A DNA stretch of 64,000 nt from Schizochytrium sp. TIO01. Lineage: Eukaryota > Protista > Bigyra: Labyrinthulomycetes. The notes below the pieces were generated by a model. That model worked only from the letters and a program-made list of their open reading frames with translations. It searched no databases and had not been told where the DNA came from. The DNA lies in assembly GCA_004764695.1 (NCBI GenBank), contig SMSO01000025.1, positions 2,852,001 to 2,916,000 on the forward strand. The letters are read 5' to 3'. The translations under genes and the position numbers were made by a program. Positions 7,287 to 23,539 of the stretch are shown here, one piece after another (position 1 is the first letter of the stretch; the number at the start of each line of letters is the position of its first letter).

Positions 7287-7948
7287 ATTTTTTTTTAATA
7301 TTTTTTTTTAAACATGTCTTTGGACTCTCTCTTATCTCTTTAATTAAAAATTAAATTTTAAAATAAAGTAGTGTCCTCTCTGAGTTCCCAAGAACTCTTA
7401 GGATTAGAGCCCTCTCAATTCCTTTCTTTCTTACAAGTTTCTTTTCTTCTCTCCTCTTCTCTTCCAATCTACTTCCTCTTATTCTCTTCTTAATGCCGGC
7501 GACTCGAAGCAGCGAACAAACAAAATCGAATCAGCAAAAACCAAAAGCCCCCGTGCCCGGCCGTGCGTGGCGTTTCTCAGCCAGAGCAGCCTTGCTCCGT
7601 GGTGCCTGCAGCGGAGCACCGTGCAGGTTCTGAGGACAGAAGCACGCTCGACGTCGCTGGACCTTGGCTGGCAGCTAGTGCCTCGTCTGCTGCGCGCGTT
7701 GACCTCGAGCAAGACGAGGTTCTTATTATTGACTTGCGCTTCTTATTACTTTATTACTTAACCCTATTCACTTATTGTGTGTAGAAAGCTCGTGGTCGCG
7801 GGTCTGCTTTCCACAGTGTCACTTTTGCGGACGCTGGTGCAGATCAAGAAGGAATCGCAGCAGCAAATCCCGAACACCTTGTAAATCGACGCTGCCGTTG
7901 CCGTCGTAGTGGTGTGTGTTTCTGCTGTAGAACTAGCTCGCAGAAACC

Positions 7949-10900
7949 ATGGCTCACAATCGGTGGAAGGACTTGGAGGGTGCCTCCACACGTAATGGTC
8001 TCACAGCATGTGATACAGAACCCGTCCACTTGGTGCCCCTGATCCAAGAAGGAATGGGCACCGTGTTGGTTGTCCATGTTACTGGCGAAGACAAGAGCAC
8101 CCGCACCGTGAGACAGGTCTCGGCTAATTGCAAAGAATGGTTCAACAAATCCCCAGATGAGATGCTTGAGCATGACCTTGATGACGTGATGCCAAAGGAG
8201 GTCTGCGCTCTGGTTGACGAGGCTATAAATTTCGAGCATTTGCCAATCGAATGCAGCACAGATCTCCCGGAGCGCTTCAAAGAGCAGGTTCTTGGACAAG
8301 ATATGTGCGACTGGTGGAAAGACATTTACAGTATCAACGACATGAACGTTTTCTTGAAGTCCAATTCCACCGTACCACCTTTAGCATCACGTGACATGAC
8401 CAGCCGACTCGTTCTTGAAACTAAGGGCCAAGTGCATGTGTCAGTATCTGCATCACGAAGGCCGCAACCCAATGATGACGATCTCAATGAAACTTTCATG
8501 CCAGTCTGGTCTGTTCTCATCACCTTTGAGGAAGCTGATGTGAACACCGAGACCTTCATGTCTGAATTCGGTGCTGTGGAGCGTCTAGATCGTCAGAATT
8601 GGCAGCTAGAGTCTGCTCGCGATGAGAAAGAACTTGCACAATTACTTACCGATTGTGTTGCAGATTTTTGCCAGTTCGACCGCGTCATGTACATCAACTT
8701 TCTTCCTGGCGGCCACTGCGAAACGGTCGCTGAGAAGTGCAAAGAGGGCATCCCTTCTTTCTTGAACTATCGTTTTCCCGCCACTGATATTCCAATCCAG
8801 GCTCGTACTTTACTCAAGCGCAACCGTGTGCGCCACATCATGGATACAACATCGCCTGGCGTTGAGCTGGTACCTTGCCACATTGATGGTCGCCTAACTG
8901 ACCTAAGCAACTGTCATCTTCGTCAGTGCGGCCCCATTCATCGACAGTACCTGAACAACATGAAGGTCTTCTCAAGCTGTACCGCTGCGGTTATGGTTAA
9001 CGACATGATCGTTGGCATGCTCTCGTGCCATAACAATGCTTGTCCACTCACCATGGGTCCAGCCAAGCGAATGCTCTTGCGTCAGCTCTGCAAGTCGGCA
9101 TCATCTGTGCTGCAAAGCATTCGATCCCGCCGATCGCAGCGTCTCGCCGCTAAGATTCAGCGCGTGTTATTGCCACGATTCGAATCTGTCACGCAAGCAG
9201 TTGAGGTCCTGTCTGAGTCTGAAGCTATTCTCCGAGATTCTGCAGAAGCTGATGCGATTGTCATCGTTAGCTACGATCTTGATGCTGAGGACGACATTCG
9301 TTCCGTACGACAAGCACTCAGCTTTGGTGTATCTGTTGACCACGATTCCGTTGTTGCCGCTACTCACGAACTTTGTGATGCAAATGCCGCTGATCTGATT
9401 CCTAACACGGCCTCTATTCACAAAGACTGTCCACAAGCTTACGCAAAACACCAAAAGGCTATTGATGACAGCAAGATGTGCGGAATTGCTGTCATTCGCC
9501 TCGTTCTCTGCGACATTGTGCTCGTTCGCTTGGGTGTACGGCAAAATATTCGCTGGGCAGGCGCCCAAGCAGCATCCACAGGCAAAGAGCTTACAACAAG
9601 CTCGCGTCTTCAGCCTCGTGGCTCGTTTCAGGCTTTTGACGAAAGATTAAGCAACGTTTCCTTTGATTGGAGTGATACTCAGCTTGATGCACTTAGCTCT
9701 TTCCGCGCCCATGCTCATGTTTCATTCTGTGATGTGCTTGCAGCTGATGAACGTCGACGAACCAACAAGCTTACCAAGCGGTTTCTTGCCAGTGTTAGCC
9801 ACGAGCTGCGGACCCCGTTCAATGGCATTGTTGGCTTGCTCAGTGCACTTTCCGAGGAGCAAGGTATGCCTGCAAGTGCCAAAGATCTTGTTGGAACAGC
9901 TGGGCGATCAGCAGATGCCATGCTTGGTATTCTCGACGACTTGCTTACAGCTGCTAAGCTTGATGAACGAAAGGTAGAACTTCTCGCCAACCCTATCGAT
10001 GTGCCTCTGATTGTCAATTCCGTATATTTACTTTTTGAGCGTACTGTCTCAGCGGAAAGTCTCCGACTCGTTGAAAAGGTCAGCTCGCATATTTCAATGG
10101 ATAAAAAAGGTTTGCTGGGTGATTCCGGACGTATTCGGCAAATCTTGCTCAACCTTGTGGGCAATGCTCTCAAGTTCTCCCACAAGTCAGACGGAAGCAT
10201 TCGTAAAGGCCAAACAATTAACCTCGAGTCGGCGATATTCTCTGACCGAGACGCTCTCCATGCTGAGGTCATGAAGACTCTCAATAAGTACCAAGGTGTG
10301 AGTCAGCCTCGTGAGGATGTTCTTCATTCTATCCTCGACTGCGTTCATCCTCTGTTAAAAGAGACTCCTGAGGGCGAAAATGAAGATGTAGGAGTTGTCG
10401 CAAACGGTACCAAGGTTGAAGATGAAGAAGCGAAAAATGCTGGTGGCACGATTCCTTTGGAAAGGTCCTCCTCTGGCAAATCTGTCTTGGAGAGCCAGGA
10501 AGTCCTCGAAATTTCTGAAGATAGCATCTGCGCAAGGAGTTCCTACAAATCTGCCTCATCTTTGATGACAGTAAATAGCGGTGAGGTGGAGCCAGAAGTT
10601 GTGTATGCCTTATTCACTGTGACAGACGAAGGTATTGGTATGGAAGAATCGGCAATGCGCAGCAAGCTCTTCCAAAAGTTCTCCCAAGTCCATTCGGTGG
10701 GTATTCGCAAGAAATATCAAGGCACTGGCCTTGGTCTTTCTATCTGCTTTGACCTCGCTATCCTTATGGGAGGCAACATCTGGGCATGCTCTTCCCCCGA
10801 TAATGGTACAGCCTTTCAGTTCTTTGTGCCTCTGCAGATGGTCCCTGCAAAAGAGGCCCCCGTGGTTAGCTCCGTTGAAGAGGAGGAAACGTCCACCTTT

Positions 10901-11389
10901 CGAATGTTATGCAAACCGTGCACTTTGCAGCCCACCCAGGATGTAGAGGAGAACAAATTTGTCACCGACAGTGAGGAAGATGAATTCGATCTCTTCATTC
11001 GGGATGCTCTAGCTACACAAAAGCCCGTGATGGTAGCTGCTGACGATAACAATGTGAACCGCCTTGTTCTCGGCCGTTCCTTCAAAAATGCCTTCCCTGG
11101 GAACCCGAATATGTGCTGCGATGGTGGACTTCCTCTCGTGGCCCTTGTTCGCAAACTCGTATTGGCTTCGTGCCCTATTGCGGCTGTCGTGATCGATTTC
11201 CATATGCCAGATTGCGATGGCTTGACCGCAGCAACAGAAATTCTAAAGATCGATCCCAAGATTAAAATCTGGCTTTACACAGCTGACACGTCCCCTGACC
11301 TGCAAGACCAAGCAACTGGTCTTGGTCTCCGTGGAGTTATTGTGAAGCCAAGTACCCTCAAAACATTCAAATCTACTCTCCTGTCCTAA
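7949..11389 (+). CDS. Phytochrome-type hybrid sensor histidine kinase (PAS-GAF-PHY-HisKA-HATPase_c-REC), bacteriophytochrome/fungal/stramenopile type, 1146 aa
   Basis: N-terminal LTACDTEPVHLVPLIQ resembles BphP CxxEPIHxPGxIQ (Cys21). GAF motifs: FDRVM, RFPATDIPIQAR, LRQCGPIHRQYLNNM, GMLSCH. PHY tongue: WAG...PRGSF. H-box SHELRTP (H618), N-box NLVGNALKF, G1 DEGIGM, F-box LFQKF, G2 GTGLGL. Receiver: ADDN...IDFHMPDCDG (D1083)...T...KP. Single ORF with no intron needed. Confidence 0.96.
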   Translation: MAHNRWKDLEGASTRNGLTACDTEPVHLVPLIQEGMGTVLVVHVTGEDKSTRTVRQVSANCKEWFNKSPDEMLEHDLDDVMPKEVCALVDEAINFEHLPIECSTDLPERFKEQVLGQDMCDWWKDIYSINDMNVFLKSNSTVPPLASRDMTSRLVLETKGQVHVSVSASRRPQPNDDDLNETFMPVWSVLITFEEADVNTETFMSEFGAVERLDRQNWQLESARDEKELAQLLTDCVADFCQFDRVMYINFLPGGHCETVAEKCKEGIPSFLNYRFPATDIPIQARTLLKRNRVRHIMDTTSPGVELVPCHIDGRLTDLSNCHLRQCGPIHRQYLNNMKVFSSCTAAVMVNDMIVGMLSCHNNACPLTMGPAKRMLLRQLCKSASSVLQSIRSRRSQRLAAKIQRVLLPRFESVTQAVEVLSESEAILRDSAEADAIVIVSYDLDAEDDIRSVRQALSFGVSVDHDSVVAATHELCDANAADLIPNTASIHKDCPQAYAKHQKAIDDSKMCGIAVIRLVLCDIVLVRLGVRQNIRWAGAQAASTGKELTTSSRLQPRGSFQAFDERLSNVSFDWSDTQLDALSSFRAHAHVSFCDVLAADERRRTNKLTKRFLASVSHELRTPFNGIVGLLSALSEEQGMPASAKDLVGTAGRSADAMLGILDDLLTAAKLDERKVELLANPIDVPLIVNSVYLLFERTVSAESLRLVEKVSSHISMDKKGLLGDSGRIRQILLNLVGNALKFSHKSDGSIRKGQTINLESAIFSDRDALHAEVMKTLNKYQGVSQPREDVLHSILDCVHPLLKETPEGENEDVGVVANGTKVEDEEAKNAGGTIPLERSSSGKSVLESQEVLEISEDSICARSSYKSASSLMTVNSGEVEPEVVYALFTVTDEGIGMEESAMRSKLFQKFSQVHSVGIRKKYQGTGLGLSICFDLAILMGGNIWACSSPDNGTAFQFFVPLQMVPAKEAPVVSSVEEEETSTFRMLCKPCTLQPTQDVEENKFVTDSEEDEFDLFIRDALATQKPVMVAADDNNVNRLVLGRSFKNAFPGNPNMCCDGGLPLVALVRKLVLASCPIAAVVIDFHMPDCDGLTAATEILKIDPKIKIWLYTADTSPDLQDQATGLGLRGVIVKPSTLKTFKSTLLS

Positions 11390-20088: not shown

Positions 20089-22695
20089 TTAGCCAGTGAA
20101 CAGGGGGATGAGTACAAGCGTGATTGTGGACACAAGCTTGATCAGCACGTGCAAAGCAGGACCAGCAGTATCCTTGCAGGGATCACCGACAGTATCGCCC
20201 GTGACGGCAGCCTTGTGCGCGTCGGAGCCCTTGGAGTGCTGGAGCTCGAGTAGTTTTTTGGTGTTGTCCCAGGCGCCTCCACCGTTGTTCAGGAAGAGTG
20301 CCATCACAATACCCGCAATGGTGGTAATCATGAGGAAACCGCCGAGGGCCTGAGCTCCCAGGAGGGGCCTATCGAGCTGGTAGCCGACTAGGCGGAAGCC
20401 AACACCGACGGCAATCGGCATCAACGTGACGAGGAGACCCGGCTGGATCATCTTGCTGAGGGCAGCTTTGGAGACAACATCGACACAGACGCCGTACTGA
20501 GGCTTCTCCGTACCATCCAAGATACCCGGTCTGTCGCGAAACTGACGGCGCACCTCCTCCACGACGGTTTGCGCAGCAGATCCCACCGCAGACATTGCCA
20601 TCGCAGAAAAGCGGAAAACCATGGCGGCTCCAAGGAAACCTCCGCAGAACACCTCGGGAGTTGCGATATCGACAACCTTAAACTCAAGACCAGTGTAGAG
20701 TTCAACCTCGTCCATAAAAGCTCTAAAGAGCAGAAACGATGCAAGTGCAGCGGATCCAACCGCAAATCCCTTCGTGGTTGCCTTCGTGGTGTTTCCAGCT
20801 GAATCAAGGCGATCAGTGACGTCGCGTACGCTCTCAGGCTGTCCGCTCATCTCCACGATGCCGCCAGCATTGTCAGCAATGGGTCCAAAGATGTCCATTG
20901 CCAGGATGTACACAGCCGACGAAAGCATTCCCATTGTGGCAACAGCGCTTCCGAAAAGGCCTCCAATGGGCTCTCCTGCAGAGTTCACAAGGCCTGAGCT
21001 CCTTCCGAGCCAGAACGAGGAAAGGATCGACGCACACATGACGAGGGTCGGGTACATGACAGACTCCATACCAATGGCAAGTCCTGCGATCACGTTGGTG
21101 GCATGTCCTGCATTACTAGCAGTGGCAATAGACTTTACGGGACGGTACTCGAAGTCCGTGTAGTACTGAGTAATGAGCACCTGAAGATATGCACTTGCCA
21201 TGCCAACCAATCCACAAAGGAAGAAGGAGAACCATGCCGAAGGGGCAGCAGCTGTGTAGAGGAGAAATCTTGTCGCAATGAAGAATCCTACAACTGCGCA
21301 GCCCATCGCAACAACGTAACCCCTCTTCAGAATAGCAATGGGGTCCTCGAGGTTACGCGCAGATGTGACGACAGTATCTCCCTGATCCGAGATCGTGAGA
21401 ACTCCAAGCGTACTAACGATGAGATCAAAGGCGTGAATAAGGAGCGGGAAGAGGACAAATCCACGTGCCTCTGTAGCGGTCATGTCACACTCCATCGAGA
21501 GGGTGCCACCAAGTACCATGGCGCTGATGATCTCTGCCGAAATACTTTCAAAGAGATCAGCTCCACGAGCCGAGCAGTCACCCACGTTGTCACCAACAAG
21601 ATCTGCAATGACAGCCGGGTTTCTCGGGTCATCCTCCGGAATGCCCTGCTCGACCTTGCCCACGAGGTCAGCACCAACGTCAGCAGCCTTGGTGAAGATT
21701 CCACCTCCGAGCTGCGAGAAGATAGCTACAAAAGATCCTCCAAACCCAAAGCCAATCAGAAGCACCGGGAGTCTTGCAAACGGGATTGCTCCAGGCTCGC
21801 CGTCAACACCCTCGTACACCGCAGCGATGATGATGAAGAGCAACGAAATGCCCAGGACCACCAGCAAAACCACAATAAGGGCCGCCACAGCGCCAGACCT
21901 CAGCGCGAGCTGAATGGTGCCGTGGTAGGACCTCATGGCAGCAGCAGAGACGCGAACGTTTGCTCTCACGGAGGTCCAAAGTCCAACGTATCCCGCACAC
22001 GCAGAGCAGGCTGCGCCCAAGAGGAACGACACTGCTGTAAGCATGGCCAAGAGGCTCTGGTTAAGCGACTCCTGACCGTGCGCAGGACGGCGGAACGCAT
22101 AGACAGCGAAGAGAATAAAACTCATAGGGAAAGCGAGCTTGAAAATGGTACCGTAGACGCGAGCAAAGAAACTATCGGAGCCCTCGCGAATTGCGGCGGC
22201 AATGCTGCGCATCTCAGATGGGCCCTCGTCCTGGAGCAAGACCCAGTGCACGAGCGCCCAGACGACAACGATGGCGCACAGGCAAATGACGAGAATACTG
22301 CCCATGATGAGGCCCTGGAAGAGGGCCACGAAAACGAGAGCAAACCCTAAGACGCCCACGATGGAGCGCAGGAGTCCTGAGCGAGGTACCATGTCGAGAT
22401 TGAGCAGAATCTGGGCAAGACTCTTGCGGCGAGAAGAGACGCCTGAGCGACGCAGGTGCATGTGCGGGGTAAATGTAGACGACGCAGAGGATGCATTTGG
22501 GTTGCCCAGGTTTCCACCAGAAGGGTTGTTCGAAGACGTTGAGGAGCGGCTGCTAAGGTTATTGGAGCCGGATTGGGCAGACGAGGCAACCGAGGTAGAG
22601 GGCATCATGAGCTCCACGTCATCGTTGGGCGCAGAGGAGGAGCCAAGAGCGGCACCGCCGCTGTGGGCGGACTTGCCGCCGCCTCCGGAGAGCAT
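20089..22695 (-). CDS. Membrane-bound proton-translocating pyrophosphatase, K+-independent (type II, AVP2/VHP2-like), about 868 aa
   Basis: GGGIFTKAADVGADLVGKVE, EDDPRNPAVIADLVGDNVGD, GPIADNAGGI, GNTTKATTKG, GGAWDN, GDTVGDPCKDTAGPA. The first ATG is at 22695; the ORF-track extension to 22839 begins at a TTG in a repeat. Confidence 0.96.
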   Translation of the reverse strand: MLSGGGGKSAHSGGAALGSSSAPNDDVELMMPSTSVASSAQSGSNNLSSRSSTSSNNPSGGNLGNPNASSASSTFTPHMHLRRSGVSSRRKSLAQILLNLDMVPRSGLLRSIVGVLGFALVFVALFQGLIMGSILVICLCAIVVVWALVHWVLLQDEGPSEMRSIAAAIREGSDSFFARVYGTIFKLAFPMSFILFAVYAFRRPAHGQESLNQSLLAMLTAVSFLLGAACSACAGYVGLWTSVRANVRVSAAAMRSYHGTIQLALRSGAVAALIVVLLVVLGISLLFIIIAAVYEGVDGEPGAIPFARLPVLLIGFGFGGSFVAIFSQLGGGIFTKAADVGADLVGKVEQGIPEDDPRNPAVIADLVGDNVGDCSARGADLFESISAEIISAMVLGGTLSMECDMTATEARGFVLFPLLIHAFDLIVSTLGVLTISDQGDTVVTSARNLEDPIAILKRGYVVAMGCAVVGFFIATRFLLYTAAAPSAWFSFFLCGLVGMASAYLQVLITQYYTDFEYRPVKSIATASNAGHATNVIAGLAIGMESVMYPTLVMCASILSSFWLGRSSGLVNSAGEPIGGLFGSAVATMGMLSSAVYILAMDIFGPIADNAGGIVEMSGQPESVRDVTDRLDSAGNTTKATTKGFAVGSAALASFLLFRAFMDEVELYTGLEFKVVDIATPEVFCGGFLGAAMVFRFSAMAMSAVGSAAQTVVEEVRRQFRDRPGILDGTEKPQYGVCVDVVSKAALSKMIQPGLLVTLMPIAVGVGFRLVGYQLDRPLLGAQALGGFLMITTIAGIVMALFLNNGGGAWDNTKKLLELQHSKGSDAHKAAVTGDTVGDPCKDTAGPALHVLIKLVSTITLVLIPLFTG

Positions 22696-23539
22696 ATAGA
22701 TGCTCGAGCCACGGGTCGGTCCGAGGAGAAGAGAAGGCGGCGCGACGCTCAAAGAGAGGCCGCGGAAACCGGTATGTCTGTCTGACTTCTGTCTTTCTTT
22801 CTTTCTCTCTGTCTTTCTTTCTTTCAAGTTCTTTTTCAATGCTCTTTCACTAATAACAAATACTCAGTCTTTCTGAGGCTTTTCATAAACATTTTACCAT
22901 TGTCAATAAATAAACAAATAAACAAATAAACAAACAAATAAATAAAGAAAGAAACAAAGAAAGAAATAAAATATTTTAACATAAAAAGTTTTTACCCCAT
23001 TACCATTACGCTAATTAATCAGAGTAGCTCCTAATAAAAAGGTGCTACTTTGCGCTAATCCTTTTTCGTGTTTTCTCCAAGTCAAAGCAAAGCAAAGCAA
23101 AGCAAAGCAAAGAAACCAACACCTTCGCGCTACGTCGACGAAGTCAGGCGTGAGCGTGGCAAACGCGACACGCTGGACCGCCGGCCGACTGCCTGTTCAG
23201 CCGGCCGTGGCATGCCTCGCCAAGCCTCTTGTTTGTCTGCGTGAATGGGCCACCCCAGTCTGTCTGCAAGCAGGGAGGGTTACGCAGCGAATGAGCGAAA
23301 CTGTACTTCTCCCTTATTATCGACAGCATGGAAATAACCAGCTGCACAGAGACCCCCCACTTCTAGGAGTACTCCCTAATAGGCCCATAGCGTGGCACTT
23401 ACTGGTTTTTGTCTTTCTTTCCTTTGATCCAAACAAAAAGAAAGAACTTCAAAGAAAGAAAGAAAGAAAAAAGAAAATAGAAAAAAAGAGAGAGAGAAAA
23501 GAAGAATCTAATCCCATAATAGCAACTTTGACCTTCCTT

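Follow-up and report, generated by a model that had tools for sequence, protein, structure and literature searches.

A predicted biliverdin-type phytochrome fused to a hybrid histidine kinase, with an apparently remodeled chromophore pocket, in a nonphotosynthetic thraustochytrid

RESULTS

One intron-free gene encodes the complete phytochrome hybrid kinase

We analyzed a 64,000-nucleotide stretch of the Schizochytrium sp. TIO01 genome (contig SMSO01000025.1, positions 2,852,001 to 2,916,000; here called the window), which carries a gene for a phytochrome joined to a hybrid histidine kinase. The first possible start of its open reading frame (ORF) is the ATG at 7949, with in-frame stops directly upstream. 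The 1146-aa product contains the Pfam domains PAS_2, GAF, PHY, HisKA, HATPase_c, and Response_reg in that order, every one above its curated cutoff; the E values of 4e-20 to 1e-4 over six ordered domains, together with the length of the ORF, are far beyond chance. A Pfam profile search of the entire 64-Mb genome returned this PHY match and no other. The features of the gene are as follows.

7949..11389, + strand: phytochrome hybrid histidine kinase gene, intron-free and complete, 1146 aa, stop codon included
8009..8242, + strand: PAS_2 domain (residues 21 to 98), Pfam PF08446, 23.5 bits against a cutoff of 21.4
8243..8593, + strand: insertion specific to the clade, separating the PAS core from GAF (residues 99 to 215), with a W122-W123 motif at 8312-8317
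8627..9103, + strand: GAF domain, the predicted bilin pocket (residues 227 to 385), Pfam PF01590
9311..9709, + strand: PHY domain (residues 455 to 587), Pfam PF00360, 46.4 bits
9554-9643, + strand: PHY tongue motifs W536-A-G538, P556-R-G-S-F560, and F563-D-E565, near-invariant across homologs and aligned with a solved bacteriophytochrome (BphP)
9779..9967, + strand: HisKA/DHp domain (residues 611 to 673), Pfam PF00512, 51.6 bits
10121..10837, + strand: catalytic ATP-binding domain, Pfam PF02518 (HATPase_c, residues 885 to 963), 72.7 bits, profile positions 36 to 110 only
11042..11371, + strand: receiver domain (REC), PF00072, profile positions 5 to 107, G000:C24:2863042-2863371

The protein-level Pfam match to Response_reg covered residues 1077 to 1140, and a six-frame search of the genome widened it to the profile positions given above. 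A preliminary description of this DNA, made from its letters, had proposed a single intronless PAS-GAF-PHY-HisKA-HATPase-REC gene; the ORF, the Pfam architecture, and a colinear 1146-aa transcript product in MMETSP all bear this out, and the positions it assigned to Cys21, H331, H618, and D1083 are exact. We discounted two ORFs on the antisense strand (7844-8299 and 9715-10284) as by-products of the long frame on the sense strand.

The catalytic residues of the kinase and receiver are intact. The phospho-acceptor His618 (codon 9800-9802) lies within SHELRTPFNG, and the run from S617 to F624 is invariant in the clade that shares the WW insertion, described below. Also invariant in this clade are the ATPase boxes: the N box at 735 (N735/N739), the G1 box D893-x-G-x-G897, the F box F908/F911, and the G2 box G925-x-G-x-G929. 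An insert of some 135 aa with little conservation (residues 746 to 880, 10184-10588) splits the ATPase domain. The receiver keeps D1032/D1033, the phospho-acceptor D1083 (codon 11195-11197, in DFHMPD), T1111, and K1133. The statement in the preliminary description that all signaling residues are intact therefore stands for the kinase and the receiver and fails for the chromophore pocket, in which the residues equivalent to Y176, Y216, and S257 of DrBphP are replaced.

The gene is nuclear and transcribed in a heterotrophic host

The window is 64 kb of a eukaryotic genome of 64 Mb in 37 contigs, and the gene sits in a multi-megabase contig, with a GC content similar to that of its surroundings. 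Its neighbors are ordinary eukaryotic genes, encoding an EF-Tu-like GTPase, Vps51, an H+-pyrophosphatase, a BRCT-kinase, an acyltransferase, and an ammonium transporter. In a collection of 15 billion sequences, an MMETSP0958 transcript product matched the window protein at 1140 of 1146 residues (99.5%) with no gaps. This full-length colinear product shows that the gene is expressed and that no intron interrupts its coding region. Further 1146-aa variants with 99% identity were among the nearest proteins in the same collection, and the frame of 1146 codons is unbroken in at least four strain variants, which carry 6 to 13 differences, mostly in the ATPase insert. The ortholog in Hondaea fermentalgiana, annotated only as "Histidine kinase 4," is 66% identical overall and 73% identical over the photosensory module. 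The phytochrome gene is a nuclear, transcribed gene of an Aurantiochytrium-type nonphotosynthetic thraustochytrid, as had been anticipated when the host was described as heterotrophic and thraustochytrid-like.

We take MMETSP0958 to be A. limacinum ATCC MYA-1381. The header of the MMETSP0958 protein carries TAXON_ID 87120, which belongs to the basidiomycete Rhizopogon burlinghamii and is probably a transposition of 87102 (Aurantiochytrium limacinum). The telomere-to-telomere genome of A. limacinum measures about 62 Mb, and that host is described as a heterotrophic stramenopile (bioRxiv 10.1101/2023.06.15.545109).

The photosensory module has the predicted fold and the hallmarks of a biliverdin-type phytochrome

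The nearest relative of solved structure by sequence is Stigmatella BphP2 (E value of 1e-35), with the DIP, PxH, WxG, and PRxSF motifs aligned. An AlphaFold2 model of the photosensory module, built on an alignment of 68 sequences, had a mean predicted local distance difference test score (pLDDT) of 86.3 and a predicted template modeling score (pTM) of 0.86. In a Foldseek search against the PDB, all 35 of the 35 top-ranked matches listed were PAS-GAF-PHY modules, with E values from 4e-35 upward, on the order of 1e-35 for the leading ones, and template modeling (TM) scores of 0.74 to 0.83; they included SaBphP2, DrBphP, Agp1, and PsBphP, and 6ptq, 5mg1, and 5i5l ranked at the top. The module is confidently predicted to be of the knotted PAS-GAF-PHY type and to superpose on solved bacteriophytochromes.

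Cys21 (codon 8009-8011) opens the PAS_2 domain within CDTEPVHLVPLIQ (the CDTEPVH motif) and is the predicted site of biliverdin attachment. This Cys is conserved in 55 of 56 other phytochromes and in all seven clade members that have an N terminus. Within P329-I330-H331, the residue preceding the GAF His331 is Ile and not Cys; at this position, 273 of 276 other phytochromes, a mostly bacterial set, have I, V, L, or M, and none has Cys. The N-terminal Cys in CxxEP(V)H combined with Ile before the GAF His constitutes the biliverdin-type pattern that the preliminary description had recognized in both Cys21 and Ile330. By these sequence hallmarks, the protein belongs to the phytochrome superfamily and is of the biliverdin type, with bilin binding predicted.

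Constraint is strongest on the GAF and DHp domains

The segments of the protein differ in how closely they match the Hondaea ortholog, with the following identities.

DHp domain: 90%
GAF domain: 84%
ATPase, C-terminal part: 80%
PHY domain: 73%
REC domain: 71%
PAS-GAF insertion segment (residues 99 to 215): 67%
N-terminal PAS core: 38%
ATPase insert: 26%

By this comparison of the two sequences, the GAF and DHp domains are under the strongest constraint.

Three conserved positions of the chromophore pocket are replaced

We counted the pocket columns over 276 other phytochromes gathered by searches, using DrBphP numbering for reference. The window protein keeps F276, D280-I-P, R295, R325, H331, Y334, and H361, equivalent to DrBphP F203, D207-I-P, R222, R254, H260, Y263, and H290; all of these apart from F203 are invariant or nearly so in the 276 others. 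Three further positions are replaced.

8693-8695: Ile249 at DrBphP Y176, the D-ring gate; Val in Hondaea; Tyr in 273 of the 276 others
8813-8815: Leu289 at DrBphP Y216; Leu in Hondaea; Tyr in 230 and Leu in 10 of the 276 others
8930-8932: Gly328 at DrBphP S257; Gly in Hondaea; Ser in 265 and Gly in none of the 276 others

The same three replacements mapped in the alignment to the solved Stigmatella BphP2, and a Tyr (Y248) is present one position before Ile249. Y216 and S257 of DrBphP help to anchor the B-ring propionate. Relatives within the clade also vary at Y176 (F, L), at Y216 (F, I, M, L, S), and at H260 (Q, Y). The GAF domain contains 11 Cys residues, of which 8 are conserved in Hondaea, among them C327 near the pocket.

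Given that the three replacements are common to the Hondaea ortholog and that the two genera agree at 84% of GAF positions, they look like a conserved remodeling of the pocket rather than its decay. Ordinary red/far-red photoconversion cannot be assumed for a pocket changed in this way. With the D-ring gate Tyr and two ligands of the B-ring propionate replaced in both thraustochytrid orthologs, the spectrum, quantum yield, or dark reversion of the protein probably differs from textbook red/far-red behavior.

The protein groups with a small set of hybrid phytochrome kinases

A HMMER search with the photosensory module against 1.84 billion cluster representatives found only 11 proteins below 1e-30. 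After the Hondaea protein (73%), the next identity was about 30%, and no bacterial protein exceeded about 30%. A small clade containing the window protein was recovered by FastTree from 130 rows (SH-like support of 99) and by IQ-TREE under LG+C20 from 53 rows (Shimodaira-Hasegawa approximate likelihood ratio test [SH-aLRT] support of 90), and it appeared again in a third tree, from IQ-TREE under LG+C20 with 42 rows. The IQ-TREE branch supports are SH-aLRT values only, and the trees were built without the named diatom, brown-algal, and viral sequences XM_002290775, XM_002179026, FN649030, and AF204951. The members of the clade are the two thraustochytrid proteins together with P0110, P0111, P0112 (CAK9030046.1), P0113, P0120, P0125, P0159, P0199, and P0227, and P0241 stands at its edge. 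The P-numbered members come from metagenome, Logan, and ENA sources, and each is a near-singleton among 15 billion proteins.

Members of this clade resemble one another in architecture as well as in sequence. The order of photosensory module, HisKA, HATPase, and REC was found in all nine members scanned (PHY was below threshold in P0199); the HATPase match begins at profile position 30 to 41 in six of the nine, and a variable insert is present in all those aligned. Of 11 clade members, 10 carry the W of the PAS-GAF insertion, and the corresponding columns are gapped in all 56 of the other phytochromes. P0113, P0120, and P0159 end at an identical point inside REC, which suggests a conserved intron met by the ORF caller. 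A scan with one clade member, P0125, across 185,579 bacterial and archaeal species found no close relative, the best matches being 26 to 44% identical over parts of the protein.

A viral protein also groups here. The contig IMGVR_UViG_642918839_000001 (154,641 bp) encodes, at L100:4602-7361, a 920-aa GAF-PHY-HisKA-HATPase-REC protein that grouped with the WW clade at SH-aLRT support of 93, on a very long branch, in the 42-row IQ-TREE C20 tree. In length this contig equals the genome of the phaeovirus Feldmannia virus FsV-158, and it is probably phaeoviral. The common end point in REC, the lack of a close prokaryotic relative of P0125, and the grouping of the viral protein together suggest that the relatives in the WW clade are eukaryotic. 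On the basis of its position in the trees and the shared WW insertion, the window protein belongs to a small clade of eukaryote-like hybrid phytochrome kinases, probably the stramenopile/phaeovirus lineage, and not to the fungal group or to any sampled bacterial group. The preliminary description had proposed a phylogeny against BphPs, fungal Fph, diatom phytochromes (DPH), and brown-algal or viral phytochromes; in our trees the protein is set apart from the Aspergillus Fph and from the sampled bacterial BphPs, and the viral comparison came through the IMG/VR protein.

Four other IMG/VR contigs matched the photosensory query (L097 to L099 and L101); three carry bacteriophytochrome-like ORFs, and the ORF of L099 has no phytochrome motifs. 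About 80 IMG/VR contigs (L017 to L096; about one-third are giant-virus metagenome-assembled genomes) encode HisKA-HATPase kinases, with a few matches reaching into a receiver domain, and the loci fetched from these contigs by the kinase-motif scan held no phytochrome photosensory module. Viral scans with clade-specific patterns, P0241, or P0199 gave no matches, a metagenome scan with P0111 gave unrelated kinases only, and the clusters retrieved from the ESM Atlas were all generic ones of bacterial phytochromes. Word-index protein searches with the clade alignment and with P0110 added no further relatives.

The genome encodes the parts for biliverdin supply and a phosphorelay

The preliminary description had called for a genome search for a heme oxygenase, an HPt protein, and response regulators, and all three kinds were found. 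Three heme-oxygenase domains are present (152 to 202 bits), along with a single HPt protein, a 186-aa ORF with HSIKGSS at G000:C24:326104-326328. The genome also holds at least 8 HisKA kinases and 18 REC domains, of which 8 are co-located with HisKA and about 10 lie outside kinases. This genome thus encodes every component needed to supply biliverdin and to run a His-Asp-His-Asp relay. A ferredoxin-dependent bilin reductase (PF05996) had no match in the 64 Mb; with this gene set, the host is predicted to make biliverdin but neither phytochromobilin nor phycocyanobilin.

Two of the heme-oxygenase domains are in tandem on the same strand (G000:C24:496430-498017; 200 and 152 bits), and their ORFs are rich in Cys-Pro motifs (CPFA, CPAF) that resemble heme-regulatory motifs. 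The third lies at C5:1781245-1781874, and none of the three adjoins the phytochrome gene. Elsewhere, at G000:C31:4937500-4946215, one strand carries two hybrid histidine kinases less than 9 kb apart; their open frames are 862 and 1074 aa long, and both have HisKA and REC.

DISCUSSION

Our analysis makes it fairly probable that this expressed nuclear thraustochytrid gene specifies a biliverdin-type phytochrome with a hybrid histidine kinase attached, the photochemistry of which is likely to be altered. By homology, a heme oxygenase would supply biliverdin to the GAF pocket, where it would form a thioether with Cys21. Light would isomerize the D ring, the PHY tongue would refold, and the autophosphorylation of His618 would change in response. 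The phosphate would then pass from His618 to Asp1083, on to the single HPt protein with its HSIKGSS motif, and finally to a response regulator.

Stramenopile phytochromes were previously known only from diatoms, brown algae, and phaeoviruses, and the proteins of these groups form one clade (Li et al. 2015, PMC4525182), and a 2026 review gives the same distribution (PMC13150293). These proteins share with the window protein the stramenopile supergroup, the PAS-GAF-PHY-HisKA-HATPase-REC architecture, and the N-terminal Cys of the biliverdin type. The host of the window protein differs from the hosts of the diatom and brown-algal proteins in being a plastid-less heterotroph of the Bigyra and not an ochrophyte, and the protein itself has Ile for the D-ring Tyr, Gly for S257, and the WW insertion, which the viral protein lacks. 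Compared with the solved bacteriophytochromes SaBphP2 (6ptq/7jr5), DrBphP (5mg1/4q0j), and Agp1 (5i5l), the fold is alike, and the motifs CxxEP(I/V)H, DIP, R-x2-S/G-P-x-H-x2-Y-L-x-N-M, PRxSF, and WxG are common to both, whereas identity is only 20 to 25% and the window protein adds the 117-aa insertion after PAS, a fused receiver, and a split ATPase domain and carries the substitutions Y176I, Y216L, and S257G in its pocket. Fungal phytochromes of the Aspergillus FphA type are similar in being heterotroph-borne, biliverdin-type hybrid histidine kinases that bear a receiver and feed an HPt relay. The Fph of Aspergillus steynii (P0013) nevertheless fell outside the WW clade in all three trees; it is 24% identical to the window protein and longer (1329 aa), is greatly extended at its N terminus, and has no WW insertion.

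Several observations count against reading the gene as one for a biliverdin-type phytochrome kinase. The D-ring gate Tyr that nearly all other phytochromes carry is Ile here and Val in Hondaea, and in mutants of Cph1 (Y176H) and phyB (Y276H), photoconversion is crippled or altered by changes at this Tyr; the replacement of S257 by Gly, with no parallel among the 276 others, and of Y216 by Leu adds to this. In the Hondaea gene model, the first 33 or so residues do not contain the EPxH portion of the motif, and the PAS core is only 38% identical between the two proteins. A Cys in the model can be aligned with Cys21 despite the missing EPxH, and the N-terminal mismatch may reflect either misannotation of the 5' end or a real divergence or relaxation. 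Support for the clade is moderate and its branches are long.

We considered whether the protein could instead be a phytochrome-derived sensor that still binds a bilin or another tetrapyrrole and in which the classical photocycle has been lost or radically changed. Lacking the D-ring gate Tyr and with its hold on the B-ring propionate weakened, such a protein would adopt a locked, fluorescent, or fast-reverting state and would report on bilin or heme availability, redox, or temperature, or respond to shorter wavelengths, and would not serve as a red/far-red switch. This reading is possible, if on the unlikely side. It draws on the same replacements of Y176, Y216, and S257 by I249, L289, and G328, which as V, L, and G in Hondaea appear conserved and not decaying, on the 84% identity of the GAF domain between two genera, on the variation of clade relatives at Y176, Y216, and even H260, and on the 11 GAF Cys residues, of which Hondaea keeps 8, C327 near the pocket being one. 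Yet Cys21, F276, DIP, R295, R325, H331, Y334, H361, WxG, PRxSF, and FxE are all kept, and a sensor blind to light would have little reason to retain the full tongue and the other pocket residues. The responses of diatom phytochromes span the visible spectrum, yet these proteins are still photoreversible (PMC13150293), so altered tuning need not mean loss of the photocycle. An expressed biliverdin-type phytochrome kinase with modified photochemistry is the reading that we prefer.

Two readings under which the gene would not be a functioning thraustochytrid phytochrome at all are very improbable. The best matches among solved or named proteins are BphPs at about 25 to 30% identity (Stigmatella and alphaproteobacterial HWE kinases), a point in favor of a recent transfer from bacteria or of bacterial contamination in the assembly. 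The contig, however, is chromosome scale and eukaryotic, with eukaryotic neighbors and similar GC, a eukaryotic transcriptome and another genus both contain the gene, and no bacterial protein among the 1.84 billion cluster representatives is more than about 30% identical. The insertion and the split ATPase are shared across a clade in which the one member scanned has no close prokaryotic relative, and three members stop at the same point in REC, as expected from an intron. Genomic context, expression, and conservation largely refute a bacterial source. The same three kinds of evidence led us to reject a pseudogene, and we give equally little credence to an evolutionary relic that is transcribed without useful function. 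The weakly conserved N-terminal PAS (38% between genera) and the noncanonical pocket could be taken as signs of such a relic, but the reading frame is unbroken in at least four strain variants, which differ mainly within the kinase insert; identity across genera reaches 84 to 90% in GAF and DHp, and the catalytic boxes are all intact.

A bolder extension of the preferred reading is that the protein and its metagenomic relatives represent an undescribed, plastid-independent lineage of eukaryotic phytochromes, marked by the WW insertion and the split ATPase, in which the thraustochytrids have replaced the Tyr gate under purifying selection and acquired a noncanonical photocycle. We regard this as doubtful at present and advance it only tentatively. 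If true, the consequences could include a shifted color sensitivity, a very fast thermal reversion that would make the protein a thermosensor, or a light-independent bilin or redox sensor. Roles in leaf litter, in zoospore release, in lipid or carotenoid synthesis, and in temperature sensing, as the preliminary description had envisaged, are speculation.

The preliminary description knew of no characterized red/far-red photoreceptor in this group, and the searchable literature agrees. It contains no report of a phytochrome in labyrinthulomycetes, although it omits most subscription journals and this absence is not proof. The survey of eukaryotic histidine kinases by Kabbara et al. does not mention any of the labyrinthulomycete genera looked for, a review of eukaryotic kinases names labyrinthulomycetes only for homologs of ethylene receptors, and a review of algal photoreceptors names thraustochytrids only for rhodopsins. 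The supplements of a diatom phytochrome paper and of an A. limacinum zoospore proteome paper contain no phytochrome sequences or mention of them. As the Hondaea entry illustrates, the sequence of this phytochrome is already in databases, where it is unrecognized and uncharacterized.

With an intact, expressed member in a labyrinthulomycete that has no plastid, the phytochrome family now reaches the heterotrophic base of the stramenopiles. This bears on whether stramenopile phytochromes arrived with the plastid, were acquired by viral or other transfer, or were present before photosynthesis in the supergroup. Given that Aurantiochytrium is genetically tractable and an industrial producer of docosahexaenoic acid (DHA) and carotenoids, a red/far-red or broader light input to a phosphorelay is directly testable and could have practical uses. 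What is known of the D-ring gate Tyr comes mainly from engineered mutants, and its conserved replacement in two wild genera amounts to a natural experiment on this residue.

Additional observation in the window

The H+-pyrophosphatase ORF noted among the neighbors of the phytochrome gene spans 20089-22839 on the minus strand and matches its Pfam profile with 783 bits. About 185 residues precede this match, and they could be either an N-terminal extension or the result of an over-long ORF that begins from TTG.

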